The notes under the pieces were generated by a model that saw only the letters and a program-made list of their open reading frames with translations, did no database searches and had not been told where the DNA came from. DNA of 64,000 bases, from the sequence record MH791398.1; one strand, written 5' to 3'. The position numbers were made by a program, and so were the translations under genes. Numbering within the stretch: position 1 is the first letter of the stretch; every line of letters begins with the position of its first letter. Shown here in pieces: positions 41,846 through 50,090 of this stretch.

Positions 41846-43369
41846 GTGATGAATTTTTATACAAGTGTTTGGCTAGATGGAAATACCATTTACGACCGAT
41901 ATTTCGATGATAACGGTAATGATAAGATCCGAAAGGTTAGATATGAACCAACTATGTATCGTCATGTTGGTGACCATATTGATACTCCATATCGGGATAT
42001 TTTCGGTAAGCGTTGTTTGCCTAAGAAACTAGATTCTGTTAGCGAAGCTAGGAAATGGTTTAAAGATATGCAGTCTATGGGGAAAGACGTATTGGGTATG
42101 GATAATTACACATTCCAATATATCTCTGATACTTACGGCTCTAATGTGTATTATGATTATACATATCTTGATATTATGTTTTTGGATATCGAGGTCCCAA
42201 CTGATGGACCTTTCCCACAAGCAGAAGAAACGAAGTATGAAATAGATACCATTCAGATCTATAGTACCAAATCAAAAAAATATTATATCTGGACTATTCG
42301 TGAATGGGATGCATGTAAATCTATTCTGGATAAGAAGGTTCTTGACGACGTTGAATATGTTTTGTGTGGGTCTGAAAAAGAAATCCTGATTAAGTTCATG
42401 CACTTTTTCTGTACGAATACACCCCATTATCTTAGTGGGTGGAATAGTGAGTTTTTTGATATTCCCTATATCATGGGTCGTATTAAAAAAGTCCTTGGTG
42501 AAAAATTTATCCATAAACTGAGTCCATTTGGTGAGACTACAGAGATCACCCAAAAGGATGACAACGACGAAGATTACACCACCTACACTATCCAAGGTGT
42601 AAACTGTGTTGACTTCATGGCAGCATATAAGAAGTTTACTTTTACCACACGACCAAACTATAAACTAGATACGATTGCGGAAGCAGAACTTAAAACAAAT
42701 AAAGTCGAAATGACTTATAAAACCTACTTGATGTTTGCTGAAAAGGATCCACAGACTTATATCGATTACTCTATTCGAGACGTTGAAATTATCAAACGAC
42801 TGGAAGAAACATTGAGTTTGATATTCCTGATTGCGTCTGTATCCTATTATGCGAGTATCAACGCACCAGACGTATTCAGTCCGTTGAAAACTTGGGATGC
42901 TATCATTTATAACAGCCTCCTTGCCAATAACGTAATTATCCCTGAAAACAAACATGCCCAACGGTCTAAGTTCGCTGGCGCATATGTTAAGGACCCGATT
43001 CCGGGGTTGTATGAGTGGCTTATTTCGTTTGACTTGACTTCCCTTTATCCACACGAAATCATGGGTAAGAATATCTCTCCCGAGACTTTGGTTGATCAGG
43101 TTGATTTCCCTCGCATCTTGGTTAAAGACCGTATGGTTCCTGATATCGAGGGGATGGGTTTGGTTAACAAGACGTTTGATGTTCCTCATGAAGGTAAATA
43201 TTCCGTCGCCCCAAATGGTGTTCGTTATAGAAATGACAAACGCGGTTTCCTTCCTATTGAAGTTGAGAAGGTGTTTGTCCAACGGAAACAAGCCAAGACC
43301 GAAGAGTTTAAAGCTGATGCCCTTGCAACTAGAGCTGCTGCGATCTTGGCAAAGAGGAATGATAAATGA
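41846..43369 (+). CDS. 43A: DNA polymerase N-terminal subunit (exonuclease, palm A)
   Basis: Exo I DIEV, Exo II GWNSEFFD, Exo III YSIRDV, motif A SFDLTSLYP; stops in the fingers domain. Confidence 0.95.
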   Translation: MMNFYTSVWLDGNTIYDRYFDDNGNDKIRKVRYEPTMYRHVGDHIDTPYRDIFGKRCLPKKLDSVSEARKWFKDMQSMGKDVLGMDNYTFQYISDTYGSNVYYDYTYLDIMFLDIEVPTDGPFPQAEETKYEIDTIQIYSTKSKKYYIWTIREWDACKSILDKKVLDDVEYVLCGSEKEILIKFMHFFCTNTPHYLSGWNSEFFDIPYIMGRIKKVLGEKFIHKLSPFGETTEITQKDDNDEDYTTYTIQGVNCVDFMAAYKKFTFTTRPNYKLDTIAEAELKTNKVEMTYKTYLMFAEKDPQTYIDYSIRDVEIIKRLEETLSLIFLIASVSYYASINAPDVFSPLKTWDAIIYNSLLANNVIIPENKHAQRSKFAGAYVKDPIPGLYEWLISFDLTSLYPHEIMGKNISPETLVDQVDFPRILVKDRMVPDIEGMGLVNKTFDVPHEGKYSVAPNGVRYRNDKRGFLPIEVEKVFVQRKQAKTEEFKADALATRAAAILAKRNDK

Positions 43370-44541
43370 ATCTAGATTATACCGATGAACAATTGGAAAA
43401 TATGACAGACGATGAGCTGAAAAAGCTCATCTCTGACTGTCGGAAATATGAGAAAGTATGTAACGTAACCCAACAAGCAAAAAAGGTATTGATCAACTCT
43501 CTTTATGGGTCTTTGGGTCATCCTGTGGGTCGTTATTATGATCTACGAATGGCAGAATCAATTACGATGGGTGGTCAGTTATCCATTAAATGGATTGCCA
43601 GAAAAACGAACGAGTATTTCAATAAGCTGTGTAACACAGAAGACGTAGATTACGTTATCTATTGTGATACCGACTCTCAATATGTTTGTGTTGAAAACTT
43701 CGTTAAAATGATGGCAGACAAGAAAGGCGTTAAGATTGAGGATGTTGAACCTATTAAATGGGTTGATATGCTTGATAAGTTCGCAAAGAATATGGTCGAG
43801 CCATATATCGATGAATGTTATCGCGAACTGAAAGATTACATGAACTATTTCGACCATAAATTGTTCATGGACCGTGAAGTAATCGCAACTCGTGGGTTCT
43901 GGACCGCTAAGAAACGATATGCTCTATCTGTGTGGGATAACGAAGGTAAGAGAAAGCTAGACTCTCATGGTAATGTAGTTCCAAAGCTCAAGATTATGGG
44001 TATCGAGACACGCCGTAGCAGTACACCACCTTTTGCGTCAGAATGTCTTGAAAAAGCGATTGACATCATTTTGACTGAGAATGAAACAAATCTCCATGCT
44101 CACGTTGACAAGGTAAAGGGTGAATATCCAAAACAGGATTATCGTAAGATTGCACAAGTAAGTAGCGCAAATAATATTGAAAAGAACTCAGACGAATTTT
44201 TCAATCATAAATCTGGTTGTCCCGGTCACGTTAAAGCAGCTATTAACTACAACAAGATTTGTGATCAGTTGAAATCAGTATCCTATGTTGACCCAATCCG
44301 TTCTGGTGAAAAAATTCAGTATGCGATGTTGAAGGTCCCGAATAAATATCATATCGAAACTATTGCTTGGCCTTCCGGTGATAAGATCCCAGACGAATTC
44401 GGAATTAATCCGGAAAAAGATATTGATTTCGTTGGTATGTATTGTAAACACTTCCAAAAGCCGCTTGGTAATATCTGCGATGCTATTGGGTGGAAACAAG
44501 AAAGCCCCGCGAATTTTTCTCTGGATGACTTGTTTGGTTAA
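43366..44541 (+). CDS. 43B: DNA polymerase C-terminal subunit
   Basis: Motif B QQAKKVLINSLYG, motif C YCDTDS, KKRYAL, clamp peptide SLDDLFG; own SD and ATGA overlap. Confidence 0.95.
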   Translation: MNLDYTDEQLENMTDDELKKLISDCRKYEKVCNVTQQAKKVLINSLYGSLGHPVGRYYDLRMAESITMGGQLSIKWIARKTNEYFNKLCNTEDVDYVIYCDTDSQYVCVENFVKMMADKKGVKIEDVEPIKWVDMLDKFAKNMVEPYIDECYRELKDYMNYFDHKLFMDREVIATRGFWTAKKRYALSVWDNEGKRKLDSHGNVVPKLKIMGIETRRSSTPPFASECLEKAIDIILTENETNLHAHVDKVKGEYPKQDYRKIAQVSSANNIEKNSDEFFNHKSGCPGHVKAAINYNKICDQLKSVSYVDPIRSGEKIQYAMLKVPNKYHIETIAWPSGDKIPDEFGINPEKDIDFVGMYCKHFQKPLGNICDAIGWKQESPANFSLDDLFG

Positions 44542-44606
44542 AAACAAAAATTAAATGGAGAGGTTATTGATGATATAATCTCTCCATAATCAAAAAGGAA
44601 AATAAA

Positions 44607-45017
44607 ATGCCAGAACAAAAAAGTAAGTATCATGATATTTTGGTTGCAGGTGACCATTACAAAAAGGTAAAAGAACATATAAATATAGATATTTCGGATA
44701 CAATACGAGATAAGTGTTTCACCCAAGAATTTATCGACCAACCGAATTATTCAGATGATATGGTTGAGCTTGTTAGTAGGGTGGTGGAAAATTCCATTAA
44801 TAAAGAACTTATATCTAGGTTCGCCATCAAAGTCAATTCAGATAGAGATGTGATTAAAATCGAGTTTGAAGCTCCATTTAAAGGTTCGAGTGAGTTTAAA
44901 TCCATCTTCCTTACAAGAGATTCGACATATATCCGCCTTTCTGGATTAAAACATTTACCAGAAGATATAAAGACGAAAAGAAAGAACCATGAGATTTTAG
45001 AAAAAGAATTTAAATAA
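44607..45017 (+). CDS. Hypothetical protein (136 aa) at the T4 gene 42/b-gt locus
   Basis: ORF with SD AAGGA and TGnTATAAT upstream. Confidence 0.65.
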   Translation: MPEQKSKYHDILVAGDHYKKVKEHINIDISDTIRDKCFTQEFIDQPNYSDDMVELVSRVVENSINKELISRFAIKVNSDRDVIKIEFEAPFKGSSEFKSIFLTRDSTYIRLSGLKHLPEDIKTKRKNHEILEKEFK

Positions 45018-45043
45018 TTAAATATTAATATAGGAAAATTAAA

Positions 45044-46153
45044 ATGGCTAAAAAAGCAAAAACGGTTAATACTGGTGCCCTTCTGGAACGTCTGTCTGGT
45101 ACTTCCTCAAATAAAATGAGTTCTATGCTATCCGATAGCGTTTTCTTTAACGACAAGGATGTAATCCGGACTCGTGTCCCGATCATTAACCTGATGTTGA
45201 GTGGTCATCTTGATGGTGGTTTGAAGCCGGGTCTAACTTGTATTGCCGGACCGTCTAAACACTTTAAATCTAACCTGAGTTTGGTTCTGGTTTCTGCTTA
45301 TCTTCGTAAGTATCCGGATGCAGTTTGTCTGTTCTTTGATAATGAATTCGGTTCTACTCCTGATTATTTTACTTCTCAAGGTGTAGATATTGACCGGGTT
45401 GTACATTGTCCGTTTATTGACGTAGAAGAACTTAAATTCGATATCGTTAAGAAACTGGAAGCAGTCAAACGTGGTGATAAGGTTATTATCTATATTGACT
45501 CTATCGGTAACGTTGCTTCTAAGAAAGAACTTGAAGATGCGAAGAATGAAAAGTCTGCACAGGATATGACCCGAGCAAAGCAGATCAAGAGTCTGTTCCG
45601 TATGGTTACCCCTTACCTGACTGTTAATGACATCCCGTGTATTGCTGTAAACCACACATACGAAACCCAAGAGATGTACAGCAAAACTGTTATGAGTGGC
45701 GGCACCGGACCGATGTATTCCGCTGACACCGTTATCATTCTTGGTAAGCAACAGGACAAAGATGGCAAAGAGCTGTTGGGTTATAACTTTGTGATGAATG
45801 CGGAAAAGAGTCGCACTATCAAAGAAAAATCCAAATTGGACTTGCAAGTTTCCTTCCAAGGTGGTATTAATACATACTCAGGTTTGCTAAAGATTGCACA
45901 AGAACTTGGTTTTGTTACCAAACCACAAAACGCACGTTATCAGCGCAATTATCTCGACCTCGAAACTGGTGAGATGTATCTGATCACCGATGATGAAAAG
46001 AAATGGACAGAAGAGGATTCCAACTCTCTGGAATTCTGGAAACCTATGTTTTCTCACAAGCCTTTTATGGATGCTGTGTCTGATGCATACAAACTGAAAG
46101 CAGTTGAAGTATCTCAGGAAGTGTTTGATGAAGTTGACCAGTTGTTCGGTTAA
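45044..46153 (+). CDS. uvsX: UvsX RecA-like recombinase
   Basis: IAGPSKHFKS, FFDNEFG, IDSIGN.ASKKE, DMTRAK, MSGGTG.MYSAD. Confidence 0.97.
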   Translation: MAKKAKTVNTGALLERLSGTSSNKMSSMLSDSVFFNDKDVIRTRVPIINLMLSGHLDGGLKPGLTCIAGPSKHFKSNLSLVLVSAYLRKYPDAVCLFFDNEFGSTPDYFTSQGVDIDRVVHCPFIDVEELKFDIVKKLEAVKRGDKVIIYIDSIGNVASKKELEDAKNEKSAQDMTRAKQIKSLFRMVTPYLTVNDIPCIAVNHTYETQEMYSKTVMSGGTGPMYSADTVIILGKQQDKDGKELLGYNFVMNAEKSRTIKEKSKLDLQVSFQGGINTYSGLLKIAQELGFVTKPQNARYQRNYLDLETGEMYLITDDEKKWTEEDSNSLEFWKPMFSHKPFMDAVSDAYKLKAVEVSQEVFDEVDQLFG

Positions 46154-46164
46154 TAAATCAAACC

Positions 46165-46193
46165 CTAAATAATACGACCTAGGAAACTAGGTC
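46165..46193 (+). promoter_or_regulatory. Late promoter CTAAATA and 5' GAAA-tetraloop hairpin for gene 40
   Basis: CCCTAAATA then GACCTAG-GAAA-CTAGGTC. Confidence 0.65.
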
Positions 46194-46212
46194 TATTTCT
46201 TACAGGTAATAT

Positions 46213-46503
46213 ATGGAAGAAATAAACGAAGATACCTATAAAGATGTAATCAATGACGCATTAAAGAATGTACAAACAGAATTGGTTATCCGGATTGATA
46301 GTGAGAATTTTCTTGTGTTTATCAACGATATACAGTATCATGATGGGAAGGTTGTATTAGATTGGAGTACTCCACACGAAGACATGAAGGAAGAACTATA
46401 CCCACATGTTAAAAATGCAGTACAAGCCATGTATAACCAAGCCAATGTCGAGATTGAAAAATCTTTCTTTGGGCGTTTTCTTGATCTTTTCAAAAGGAAA
46501 TAA
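46213..46503 (+). CDS. 40: Head vertex assembly chaperone
   Basis: After uvsX; L..V.TELVI....V.I..I....KV.LDWST....KEELYPHV..AV. Confidence 0.8.
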   Translation: MEEINEDTYKDVINDALKNVQTELVIRIDSENFLVFINDIQYHDGKVVLDWSTPHEDMKEELYPHVKNAVQAMYNQANVEIEKSFFGRFLDLFKRK

Positions 46504-46504
46504 A

Positions 46505-47020
46505 ATGACAGAACAAACCTGCGACCGTAATGATTGTTATGATGTAACTGGATTTCCAGAGGATACCCTTGTTACCTTTTGTGCCCCCGACATTTACGGG
46601 GACATGAGGGAACAAACATGGACTCTATATCAACTTCTAGAGATTCAACAGGGTAACCGGATCCTTCTAAAGGGGCCGGAAACCGGTAAATACGCAACGA
46701 TCTTACGTATGGTCGATACGGAGTTCACAGAACCGGTCAACCCCAACGTATGGGAAATCCATATGTCTAACGGGAAATCTTGGTTGTGTGCAGAGAACCA
46801 TCAAGTTCTGAGTCTATATGACCGCAAGAGCCCCTATCAGGCTCTATATGCAGCTCAATATTGTACTCCTGATGGTGGTGTTGTGAATCGGGTAAAACGG
46901 GTTCGTCAATACAAATATAAGGCTAGGTTCTGGATGCATATCATCACCGAGGACGATGTGCCGTTCGTGCTGAATGATACCGGTATTCTTCATTTTTCCT
47001 CACAGAAAAAGGTTGTATAA
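46505..47020 (+). CDS. Free-standing HINT/intein-like domain protein (degenerate)
   Basis: Block A-like GFPEDTLV, block B-like WEIHMSNGKSWLCAENHQVL, block F/G-like ..EDDVPFVLNDTGILH; SD AAGGA. Confidence 0.6.
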   Translation: MTEQTCDRNDCYDVTGFPEDTLVTFCAPDIYGDMREQTWTLYQLLEIQQGNRILLKGPETGKYATILRMVDTEFTEPVNPNVWEIHMSNGKSWLCAENHQVLSLYDRKSPYQALYAAQYCTPDGGVVNRVKRVRQYKYKARFWMHIITEDDVPFVLNDTGILHFSSQKKVV

Positions 47021-47026
47021 ATAATT

Positions 47027-47080
47027 AAAAAGTCGCTTGCGTTATGGGATAATCTTTAACGTAAGCGACTTTTCTTTTTT
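47027..47080 (+). terminator. 17-bp hairpin with U-tract before gene 41
   Basis: AAAAGTCGCTTGCGTTA..TAACGTAAGCGACTTTT + TCTTTTTT. Confidence 0.6.
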
Positions 47081-47093
47081 ACAGGTGTTTTTA

Positions 47094-48653
47094 ATGAGTA
47101 TTTCACAAATTATTATCAATAACCTCGTTTTCAACGGCGAGTATTTTGGTAAGGTGTACCCTTTTCTTAAATCCGAATATTTCTCTAAGGGGCCTTATCG
47201 TATTGCATTTGACTTGATTGATACCTATGCAAAAAAGCATAACAAAGCTCCGTCGGTTGCGGCTCTGGATGTTATGCTGGAACGCAAACAGAATATGAGT
47301 CAAGTAGAGTATGACCAGACTAAAGTTTTGGTATCTCGAATTGAACAAATCCCAGAAGATAAAAACTGGTTGATTGAAGAGACAGAATCTTTCTGTAAAG
47401 AACGTGCTATCGATATTGCATTATCTGAGTGTATCCAGATCCGTGAAAACTTCGCCAAACCACTGGATGAGCAAGACCCGAAAATAAAAGATATCGGGGC
47501 AATGCAAGAGATCATGAAAAAGGCTATGTCTGTTGGCTTTACTTTTGACGTTGGTCATGATTATATGAACAGCGCAGAAGAACGTTGGGAAGCATATAAC
47601 CAAAAGACAAATAAGATCCCGTTCCTGAATCATATGCTGAACCGGATCACCAAGGGTGGGGTTGAACGTGGTACGCTTAACGTTATTCTAGCCGGTACTG
47701 GTGTTGGTAAGTCTATCGGTCTGTGTCACCTTGCAACCGAGTATATGCAACTCGGGTTAAACGTGTTGTACGTCTCGTTTGAGATGTCGGAAGAAACTGT
47801 AGGTAAGCGTATTGACGCAAACCTAATGGACCTGACTCTGGACGAGCTAGATAGTGGACTTATCCAAAAATCTGAGTTCATGAACCGGTTCAACAAAAAG
47901 GTTGCAGGTAAAAAGCTTGGTAAGCTTTATGTTAAGCAGTTCCCAACATCAGGGGCAAACGTAAACCACATCAGAAACCTGATGGATGAGCTTGAAATGA
48001 AAAAGGGTTTCAAGCCAGATGTTATCTGCTGCGATTACCTAGGTATCATGGCGTCGTCTCGTATGAAATTCTCTGATAACTCTTACTCTTTCATCAAGGC
48101 AATTTCAGAGGAAGTTCGTGGTCTGGCAATAGAGAAGAAAGTTGTTGTATGGTCTGGTGCGCAAACCAACCGTGGGTCTTCTGGTTCCCTTGAGATTGAC
48201 AAAGCGGATATCGCGGATTCGTTTGCACTTCTCCATGGTTGCGACTTCGTATTGGCAATTTCAGAAGATGAAGATCTGGTACAGATGGGACAACAGTTGT
48301 TTAAGCAACTTAAATCTCGTTATGGAGATATCAACACCCATAATAAATTCTGTCTGGCTGTTCAGAAAAATTATATGAGGTGGTCAGATCTCGACGACAC
48401 AACACCATATACCGTTGTGTTTGAGCGCAAAGATTTGGAAGAGAAAACGGATATTCAGGAGGATGCTGTTATTGTTCGTCAAGGAGACCAAATCACATCG
48501 ATCCCCGTTGAGATAACTCAAGAAATGGAAGATGTCATCGACACAACCCCCATGGGTAGTTCTATGTTCAAGCGAAGGATGAGCAAAACCGAAGTTGATT
48601 TTAATGACCTCCTTGCAGAACAATCGGTTGACGAAGATATCCCTTGGGATTAA
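47094..48653 (+). CDS. 41: Replicative helicase, no intein
   Basis: YFGKVYPFLKSEYF, LAGTGVGKS, YVSFEM, CDYLGI, KQLKSRYGD; start adjusted. Confidence 0.96.
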   Translation: MSISQIIINNLVFNGEYFGKVYPFLKSEYFSKGPYRIAFDLIDTYAKKHNKAPSVAALDVMLERKQNMSQVEYDQTKVLVSRIEQIPEDKNWLIEETESFCKERAIDIALSECIQIRENFAKPLDEQDPKIKDIGAMQEIMKKAMSVGFTFDVGHDYMNSAEERWEAYNQKTNKIPFLNHMLNRITKGGVERGTLNVILAGTGVGKSIGLCHLATEYMQLGLNVLYVSFEMSEETVGKRIDANLMDLTLDELDSGLIQKSEFMNRFNKKVAGKKLGKLYVKQFPTSGANVNHIRNLMDELEMKKGFKPDVICCDYLGIMASSRMKFSDNSYSFIKAISEEVRGLAIEKKVVVWSGAQTNRGSSGSLEIDKADIADSFALLHGCDFVLAISEDEDLVQMGQQLFKQLKSRYGDINTHNKFCLAVQKNYMRWSDLDDTTPYTVVFERKDLEEKTDIQEDAVIVRQGDQITSIPVEITQEMEDVIDTTPMGSSMFKRRMSKTEVDFNDLLAEQSVDEDIPWD

Positions 48654-48693
48654 ACTATGTGGGTACTAGTTACCCACTTGTTGAGGTTGTATT

Positions 48694-49644
48694 ATGAAAG
48701 ACGAATTTATTGGTTCTACTTTTAAGACTCCAAAAGGTGGGGTACTAACTGTGGTTGGTATATTTGGAAAAACCAAGACGCATAATAAGGTGTATCTGGC
48801 GAAATGTTCAATATGTTCATTGGATACAGAATTATATCCTGATGGATTTAGGTCTACTAAGGGTAGTTTTAAATTGGGACAAACCCCATGTGGATGTGCA
48901 AAATCCCCACAATTAAATTCTCGTCAGAGGTCAATAATAATCAAAAGATTGTTGAAATCAGAAAACATGAACCATATTTTTGTTGGATTTGTTGGTGGTG
49001 AATATAAGACGAATACGACAAAGTTGATATGTATTTGTCCAACACATGGCGAGTATCGAGTATCATATGCAAACTTTTCTAACAAAGGTTCTCGATGTTC
49101 TAAATGTGGAATCAATTACACATCGAGACTGAAAAAATTCAAAGACCCATATAATACAGCAAAAAGTAGATGTGAAGGTTTTGGTGTTGAATTTATTGAA
49201 TTCGTTGGTGGTGAATACATAAACCAGAAAACATTGGTTTTATATAAATGTCCAAAACATGGTTTACATAGGAAATCATTCTCAGCCATCGTGAATACTG
49301 ATAGTGGTTGTCCAAGCTGTGCTTCTTCTGGATACGATAAATCAAAGTCTGGGTGGTTTTATATCTTTGAATATACAAAAGATAATGATACCGTATACAA
49401 ATACGGGATAACAAATAGAGATCCCGATATTCGTTCGAAAGAACATATTAAGGGTATTCATAACGTTGTTTCTAATTGTGTATTGGTGAAACAATTTGAA
49501 GATGGAAATCTCCCACTCATAATAGAGTCCAAAATAAAAGCTAAATACAATGGTGTATGTGATTGGTTGTCCTCTGGAAACACAGAAACTGTAACCAAAG
49601 ATAATCTTAATGATATACTTTCTATTGTTGAGGATTTAACGTGA
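48694..49644 (+). mobile_element. Free-standing homing endonuclease-like gene (Cys/Zn repeats, C-terminal GIY-YIG-like domain)
   Basis: Repeated FVGGEY...CP.HG...C..C units; GWFYIF..YKYGITNRDPDIR..E. Confidence 0.75.
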
Positions 49645-50090
49645 GTATTAAAACTATTATGGACGGGATTTATTCCGTCCGTATGCTAGACCTATTAAGA
49701 AAACCATTTCGTAATTGGGAAGCATACAAGCGCGGTATTATCGACGAAGCCGGTGAGTTTATTAAGAAGCCGGAAACCGTGAGAGAAAAAGCGGCGTATA
49801 CATCATTTCACGCAGCAATTAGATCACTGAAAATAAACCTTCAAAAGTATGGGGGCGAGTCGGTATCTAAATCGTTGGCGGTGAAGGCTGGATATGACAC
49901 TTTAACAGAATCATATGGTCAATCAGAATACACGATTGAAATGTTGTATGAAGAGATGATCGCTGGTGATTCCGGGGGTAATGTGACAAACATCGCAACT
50001 GGGGTAAAATCTGGTTCTGTTACAGATAAAGGTCCGTCTGTCATGGGGAAGAAAAAAGAGCGTCGTAAAATTGAAGTAAAAGCCCCGTAA
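49641..50090 (+). CDS. 61.1: gp61.1-like protein (GTG start)
   Basis: YSVRMLDLLRKPF..WEAYKRGIIDE.G..EK.AYT.FH. Confidence 0.75.
   Translation: MSIKTIMDGIYSVRMLDLLRKPFRNWEAYKRGIIDEAGEFIKKPETVREKAAYTSFHAAIRSLKINLQKYGGESVSKSLAVKAGYDTLTESYGQSEYTIEMLYEEMIAGDSGGNVTNIATGVKSGSVTDKGPSVMGKKKERRKIEVKAP

Follow-up and report, generated by a model that had tools for sequence, protein, structure and literature searches.

The usual view of inteins is that of selfish elements whose survival depends entirely on clean splicing from essential proteins. To our knowledge, yeast HO is the only well-known domesticated intein descendant, and it has kept its endonuclease.

[quoted passage not shown] Yeast HO is a free-standing, non-splicing, intein-derived protein without exteins (PMC7282813). 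BIL domains are HINT domains outside the classical intein setting; they lie within larger proteins and keep the residues for N- or C-terminal cleavage (PMC7664689). BIL domains and class 2 inteins have also been revived (PMC7664689). The HINT domains of Hedgehog proteins are also part of larger proteins, and they have kept catalysis. In the 'fractured genes' of T4-like phages, split gp41 inteins occur as two halves, each joined to part of the host gene (PMC2677866). These systems are compared here with a small ORF of Aeromonas phages that is predicted to encode a HINT domain and nothing else.

The ORF lies in a window of 64,000 nucleotides (record MH791398.1), the whole stretch of DNA analysed. 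Positions 44000-50000 of the window are a 100% match to Aeromonas phage Asswx_1 and have 95-99% identity to other CC2-type phages (Straboviridae, Emmerichvirinae, Ceceduovirus; megablast); by this sequence match, the window comes from a T4-like phage of Aeromonas that belongs to the CC2/Asswx_1 type. In several CC2 relatives, megablast covers only 75-91% of 44000-50000. The genes of the locus follow one another on the plus strand in the order 43A, 43B, 136-aa ORF, uvsX, gene 40, HINT ORF, gene 41, and endonuclease-like ORF:

41846 to 43369, plus strand: DNA polymerase 43A
43366 to 44541, plus strand: DNA polymerase 43B
44607 to 45017, plus strand: 136-aa ORF (phrog_26473) between 43B and uvsX
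45044 to 46153, plus strand: uvsX
46176 to 46193, plus strand: smaller terminator-like hairpin between uvsX and gene 40
46213 to 46503, plus strand: gene 40, head vertex assembly chaperone (PF11113, E = 1e-17), stop codon at 46501-46503
46494 to 46499, plus strand: Shine-Dalgarno-like AAGGAA within the 3' end of gene 40, 5 nt 5' of the ATG of the HINT ORF
46505 to 47020, plus strand: HINT ORF of 171 aa, ATG at 46505, stop codon TAA at 47018-47020; match to phrog_16672 over residues 1-171 of 171 (E = 2.1e-104)
47028 to 47073, plus strand: hairpin of 17 bp with a subsequent U-run (47070-47079), downstream of the HINT ORF and ahead of gene 41 (dG -25.3 kcal/mol, z -7.4)
47094 to 48653, plus strand: gene 41, DnaB-type replicative helicase (phrog_19, E = 2e-110), intact, 519 aa, ATG at 47094
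48694 to 49644, plus strand: homing-endonuclease-like ORF of 316 aa directly after gene 41

A sequence-only reading of this DNA had described a 171-aa ORF with its own Shine-Dalgarno sequence between genes 40 and 41, which it took to be adjacent in T4, next to an intact gp41, and these points are borne out. A single nucleotide separates the gene 40 stop codon from the ATG of the HINT ORF. The gap between genes 40 and 41 of T4 is 9 nt, so the HINT ORF is an extra gene relative to T4. The product of gene 41 is encoded by one ORF that is colinear with T4 gp41 and uninterrupted (45% identity, 3 gaps), and its length equals that of gp41 in the sister phage L007. The start of the HINT ORF is placed at 46505 because the orthologs all begin at the equivalent Met and because a frame of 204 aa opening at 46406 would overlap with gene 40; this longer frame was therefore rejected as the gene. 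A foreign GC content was also rejected, as the HINT ORF has 45% GC, like its neighbours uvsX and gene 41. The setting is similar to that of the split gp41 genes in that it is found in a T4-like phage, in the neighbourhood of gene 41, and with an endonuclease-like gene nearby (48694..49644); in contrast to the split inteins, which are halves fused to host gene pieces, there is one contiguous HINT ORF and an intact gp41 (PMC2677866).

Some features of the flanking genes are of separate interest. Two ORFs with a 4-nt overlap make up gene 43 (family B DNA polymerase), and their junction has no intein; phage 65 has the same split, annotated as 43A/43B, and a split intein is present in PolB of other Aeromonas T4-like phages (PDB 9hth, which is among the fold matches of the HINT protein). 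Most of the stretch around the 136-aa ORF (about 44514-45053) aligns to gaps in sister phage L007, which suggests that the region from 43B to uvsX is an indel or replacement hot spot. The gp40 protein has 96 aa here and 114 aa in T4, and BLASTP aligns residues 12-77 here with residues 36-102 in T4; T4 gp40 thus has about 24 extra residues ahead of the aligned core. Mutants of T4 gene 40 show temperature dependence. The ORF at 48694..49644, which has three CapR homology domains and DUF723 and matches phrog_681 ('endonuclease'), resembles, by its sequence, a homing endonuclease encoded on its own. In L007 this ORF has diverged (42-77% DNA identity), and a second CapR ORF lies further downstream there. 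Scans of the window with Rfam and for tRNA found nothing.

Family searches with the HINT protein of the window gave no match in Pfam at E<=1 and none in NCBIfam or PADLOC, and only the uncharacterised phrog_16672 was matched in PHROGs. Two orthologs have weak, sub-threshold matches to Pfam Intein_splicing (E = 0.041 and 0.14), with a score of 14 bits that is far below the cut-off of 35.8. Searches of PDB sequences with single sequences and with a five-sequence profile found nothing significant, the gp41-1 intein appearing at E = 1.2. A profile of five orthologs was then run with HMMER against 1.84 billion representative proteins and, outside the family itself, matched two multi-intein proteins (E = 4.5e-5 and 7.5e-4). 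Both are genuine (Pfam Intein_splicing, E = 1e-36 to 1e-38), and the matches sit on block B of all six intein copies in the two proteins. Three of the five marginal matches from this search (P0008-P0010) are repetitive Ig-like proteins and were judged spurious.

Alignment A3 of the family consists of the five earlier sequences and three more divergent members. When these eight sequences were compared by hhalign with four mini-inteins cut from the two multi-intein proteins, HINT residues 16-164 were aligned globally with intein positions 1-139 (score 28.4, P = 2.3e-5), and the local score was 42.5 (P = 2.3e-6); none of 24 column-shuffled controls exceeded 5.0, and reversed controls reached 1.5 in the global and 10.3 in the local comparison. 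Blocks A, B, F, and G are present in the HINT ORF in the order and with the spacing of inteins (hhalign global alignment; HMM match for block B). In the reciprocal direction, an HMM of these same four inteins, which are unrelated to the ORF family, searched against all six-frame pieces of the window places the HINT ORF first (E = 4.4e-4) and detects no second HINT domain in the 64 kb. By these sequence comparisons the likeness of the HINT ORF to inteins exceeds chance.

Structure prediction, which the sequence-only reading had proposed as a check of the HINT fold, agrees with the profile comparisons. A first AlphaFold2 model from five sequences was poor (pLDDT 55) and was used only as a weak pointer; its best 22 PDB matches are all inteins or BIL domains. 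The AlphaFold2 model from alignment A3 has pLDDT 88.8 and pTM 0.83 and has the all-beta HINT fold. The top 50 Foldseek matches of this model in the PDB are without exception (50/50) inteins, BIL domains, or Hedgehog, with a Foldseek probability of 1.00. The best match is the VidaL intein 6vgv (E = 1.5e-5, TM 0.76 on target, rmsd 3.3 Å); BIL domains (2lwy, 6tmm/6y75) are found at ranks 2 and 7-10, the gp41-1 intein (6qaz) is at rank 11, and further matches include NrdJ-1 (8ubs), Npu DnaE (4kl5), and class 3 DnaB inteins. Among the predicted viral structures of BFVD, the CC2 ortholog is followed by intein-bearing terminases, polymerases, and helicases and by a few small stand-alone Hint proteins. 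The profile alignments and the predicted model show a HINT fold and homology to inteins. The fold predicted for the HINT protein is that of class 1 mini-inteins (6vgv, 8ubs, 6qaz, 4kl5; TM 0.72-0.76 on target length), with which the protein also shares the arrangement and spacing of blocks A, B, F, and G, a similar size, both His residues, and the lack of an endonuclease insert. Unlike them, it does not interrupt a host protein, and its sequence identity to them is only 10-16%.

The segments of the HINT ORF that correspond to parts of an intein are the following:

46505 to 46549, plus strand: leader of 15 residues where an N-extein would be, with weak conservation and D/N at -3, modelled as packed on the core (pLDDT 87 for residues 11-20)
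46550 to 46576, plus strand: block A-like segment G16-T24 (GFPEDTLVT), with invariant Gly16 at the position of the Cys1/Ser1 nucleophile
46748 to 46810, plus strand: block B-like segment V82-L102, with Ala96 at the Thr position and invariant His99; the most constrained part of the protein
46928 to 46996, plus strand: block F/G-like segment F142-F164, with His145 at the Asp/Cys position F:4, invariant penultimate His163, and Phe164 at the terminal Asn position, followed by Ser165 at +1

Residue states were read across eight sequence clusters of the family, which is tiny, so that conservation statistics are thin. The Cys1 position is occupied by Gly in 8/8 clusters, and the block B His (His99) and the penultimate His (His163) are also found in 8/8. 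At the block B Thr position the clusters have A, A, C, C, C, C, P, and S; at F:4, H or N; and in place of the terminal Asn, F, F, V, Y, G, V, G, and A. The +1 residue is Ser in six of the eight. [quoted passage not shown] There is no class 3 WCT motif, the residue at His99+2 being V/T/I/L, that at F:4 H/N, and that before the penultimate His L/M/V. The block motifs, the Gly at position 1, the change of Thr to Ala with retention of His in block B, and the lack of a terminal Asn had all been read from the letters of this one phage, and the residue map agrees; across the aligned clusters it shows that Cys1, the terminal Asn, and the class 3 Cys have been lost in every family member.

With Gly in place of Cys/Ser1 and F/V/Y/G/A in place of the terminal Asn, every splicing step is without its nucleophile, and because Cys/Ser1, the terminal Asn, and the block F Cys are all missing we infer that the HINT protein is incapable of splicing or self-cleavage. 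The ORF is not an in-frame insertion with exteins in a host gene; it has its own ATG and stop codon in seven lineages, and the only sequence outside the HINT domain is the leader of 15 aa and a tail of 7 aa. Blocks B and F are about 40 residues apart, which leaves no room for an endonuclease domain. The protein might still be autocatalytic in an unconventional manner, be it splicing akin to that of class 2 or class 3, cleavage as in BIL domains, or detachment of the 15-aa leader, as the two catalytic His residues are invariant, most clusters have Ser after the Asn position, and inteins tolerate many active-site variations (PMC7664689). Such activity is very improbable given the residues at the terminal position, the H/N at F:4, the Gly at position 1, the lack of Trp at His+2, and the lack of exteins for joining. 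The invariant His99 and His163 could reflect the survival of residual chemistry or of ligand binding.

Yeast HO is, by analogy, the nearest described system in concept: it is a stand-alone, intein-derived gene without exteins, non-splicing (a property inferred from residues for the HINT ORF), and kept for a new role. HO differs in having a LAGLIDADG endonuclease and a zinc finger and in cutting DNA, whereas the HINT ORF encodes the splicing domain only; with 171 aa in total and no Pfam domain it has neither the LAGLIDADG endonuclease nor the C-terminal zinc finger. BIL domains rank high in the list of fold matches, but the HINT ORF stands alone and is without their cleavage residues. It is also unlike the catalytic Hedgehog HINT domains. 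Predicted 'Hint module' proteins of other phages (BFVD A0A8S5P792, 144 aa, and A0A2Z3EFP0, 172 aa) are similar in size and fold (TM 0.65) but have no detectable sequence relation to the HINT ORF (6-13% identity); given these small ORFs, free-standing HINT ORFs are not unique. In the part of the literature covered by our search there was no paper on the phrog_16672 family or on stand-alone phage Hint proteins, and no description of a conserved, nucleophile-free, free-standing HINT protein.

By tblastn the HINT gene is found in 21 phage records, all of them Aeromonas T4-like Emmerichvirinae, and phrog_16672 is present in 21/21 sequenced Emmerichvirinae records. Identity is 100% across 14 CC2-type genomes, 62% in Aswh_1/ZPAH1, and 32% in phage 65; metagenome members include P0002 (80%), P0004 (54%), P0006 (29%), P0007 (21-22%), and P0005. 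A word-index search, IMG/VR, and two scans of metagenomes yielded no copies other than known ones or ones like that of phage 65, and tblastn with the divergent P0004, P0006, and P0007 found nothing beyond the 21 Aeromonas phage records. A 40-aa insertion in the ortholog of AsSzw2 (MN871441.1, L003 3501-4136) was dismissed, as it consists of a run of N with in-frame stops in a record labelled UNVERIFIED_ORG. The order of gp40, HINT ORF, and DnaB-type helicase is kept in every lineage for which the context is available (seven lineages, down to about 22% identity). In these seven lineages the HINT ORF is a separate gene call, and its length (163-175 aa) and intact frame are kept even where gp41 is only 53% identical.

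Codon comparisons likewise point to a maintained gene. In the CC2 group the HINT gene has 0 nonsynonymous and 7-11 synonymous differences, and against P0002, the nearest divergent allele, dN/dS is 0.12. Constraint is concentrated in codons 77-125, which comprise block B and the following residues (pS 0.68, which is saturated; pN 0.02; dN/dS about 0.01), and codons 17-76 form a variable lobe (pN 0.31). These substitution patterns show strong purifying selection on a gene that, by this measure, is not decaying. Both the synteny and the dN/dS comparison had been suggested in the sequence-only reading, which also raised the idea of a relic. Of the two outcomes that it had named as refuting a HINT protein, a non-HINT fold in structure prediction and orthologs free of purifying selection, neither was observed. 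That the ORF is a decaying intein relic with no present function would fit the loss of all catalytic nucleophiles and the lack of any family annotation, but it is highly improbable in view of the preserved frame, length, and position across lineages and of the purifying selection, both overall and in the core. The more specific suggestion of a relic excised from gp41 is not supported either: gp41 has no scar, the gp41-1 intein is only at rank 11 of the fold matches, the ORF is coupled to gene 40, and a hairpin precedes gene 41. Apart from adjacency, nothing speaks for an origin in gp41.

The HINT protein is the fastest-evolving among the products of four neighbouring genes (uvsX, gene 40, HINT, and gene 41), with 34% identity to phage 65 compared with 90% for uvsX, 83% for gp41, and 54% for gp40. 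The gp40 protein is itself fast-evolving in the clade (43-57% identity between lineages). Between the window and the sister phage L007 the divergence of the HINT gene is sharply bounded:

46554 to 46973, plus strand: allele island with 45-87% DNA identity to sister phage L007, flanks mostly at 92-100%

Because synonymous sites are saturated, the divergent allele of L007 is likely an old allele swapped in by recombination and not the product of a local burst of change.

Regulatory context separates the HINT ORF from gene 41 and joins it to gene 40. The HINT ORF starts 1-5 nt after the gene 40 stop codon in all lineages, and a strong, GC-rich, terminator-like hairpin precedes gene 41 in 6/6 lineages; the hairpin sequences are unrelated, and most are followed by a U-run. 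Given the short gap and the downstream hairpin, the HINT ORF appears to be the distal cistron of a 40-HINT pair, apart from gene 41. The relative frame of gene 40 and the HINT ORF is the same in phage 65 and L013 but different in the window, L002, L009, and L010. This variation among lineages rules out a conserved gp40-HINT fusion by recoding, and a fusion by readthrough or frameshift was rejected; it also fits the view that the ORF is free-standing, as had been proposed. The T4 late-promoter consensus TATAAATA is found at 47016..47023 (plus strand), overlapping the HINT stop codon, and a sigma-70-like TTAAAA-17-GATAAT with an extended -10 TG is found at 47025..47053 (plus strand), within the hairpin just upstream of gene 41. 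Neither is above chance or kept in relatives; the late-promoter consensus, no more frequent in the window than chance predicts, was rejected. The 3' end of the HINT ORF recalls the late promoter and hairpin layout described upstream of phage homing endonuclease genes (PMC2677866).

The ORF very probably encodes a dead, free-standing HINT protein that is under selection. It would be a single HINT domain lacking exteins, an endonuclease insert, and the nucleophiles for splicing or cleavage, and selection would keep it as a stand-alone protein in Emmerichvirinae, i.e., the CC2- and 65-like Aeromonas T4-type phages. The explanation that we favour, and regard as probable, is that of an exapted, splicing-dead mini-intein that serves as a non-catalytic binding module and is made in step with gp40. 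The former active-site core (block B, His99, His163, and Gly16) would serve as the scaffold, the fast-evolving N-terminal lobe (residues 17-76) may provide the specificity surface, and the protein would be produced with gp40 as the last cistron of the 40-HINT unit. A binding module is favoured because the active-site residues Gly16, His99, and His163 are invariant and the block B core is near-frozen while the N-terminal lobe varies, and because the HINT protein has no enzyme signature; its acidic pI (5.2-6.2) argues against a general nucleic-acid binder. The translational coupling and the layout of the 40-HINT unit make gp40 the first candidate partner. Taken as a specific claim, the binding role together with the gp40 partnership is tentative, as it draws on gene order and translational coupling only.

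A partner in the replisome is equally conceivable, because gene 40 and the HINT ORF sit in a replication and recombination cluster (uvsX, 41, 61). As a replisome accessory, the dead HINT protein would bind the gp41 helicase, its loader, or the primase and modulate loading or activity. The HINT ORF is directly upstream of gene 41 in every lineage, within the uvsX-41-61 cluster, and helicases of the DnaB/gp41 kind often carry inteins and split inteins (PMC2677866), with 6qaz and 6bs8 as examples among the fold matches. This role is nonetheless fairly unlikely: the terminator-like hairpin sets the HINT ORF apart from gene 41 in each of the six lineages and the coupling is to gene 40, the HINT protein evolves far faster than gp41 between the window phage and phage 65, and the same replisome works in T4 and in other T4-like phages that have no HINT protein.

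The rapid evolution of the HINT protein, the divergent allele of L007 in a genome otherwise mostly 92-100% identical, and the hypervariable lobe beside an ultra-conserved core also bring to mind a protein used in conflict with the host or with co-infecting phages, as an inhibitor or decoy of host factors, a decoy for HINT systems, or a trap for split inteins; the last two had been raised in the sequence-only reading. The protein is small, acidic, and clade-specific, and split inteins are present in other Aeromonas T4-like phages (Aes123 PolB1, PDB 9hth). However, the PADLOC and NCBIfam searches gave no match, the divergent allele with its saturated synonymous sites points to an old recombinational import and not to local positive selection, and the HINT protein is identical across the 14 CC2-type genomes; a role in conflict is therefore unlikely. 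The trap in particular is mechanistically unlikely, as a HINT domain that folds completely in cis offers no unpaired half for the capture of a split-intein fragment.

The favoured reading of a splicing-dead mini-intein retained as a binding module has consequences for how inteins and these phages are viewed. A splicing domain that has neither its chemistry nor a host gene, and that is selected at a fixed locus throughout a subfamily, would indicate that the HINT scaffold can be recruited for a non-catalytic job. The 'hypothetical protein' family phrog_16672 gains a name and a testable hypothesis, and the HINT ORF offers a natural nucleophile-free HINT scaffold for comparisons in protein engineering. 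It is possible, if speculative, that the virus keeps a bare intein domain, stripped of its host protein, nucleophiles, and mobility, as a binding scaffold, either as an obligatory partner of gp40 or as a weapon in conflict, with the cleft that held the exteins and the two His residues as the site of interaction. If true, this would be the first case in a virus of a bare intein splicing domain kept as a gene of its own.
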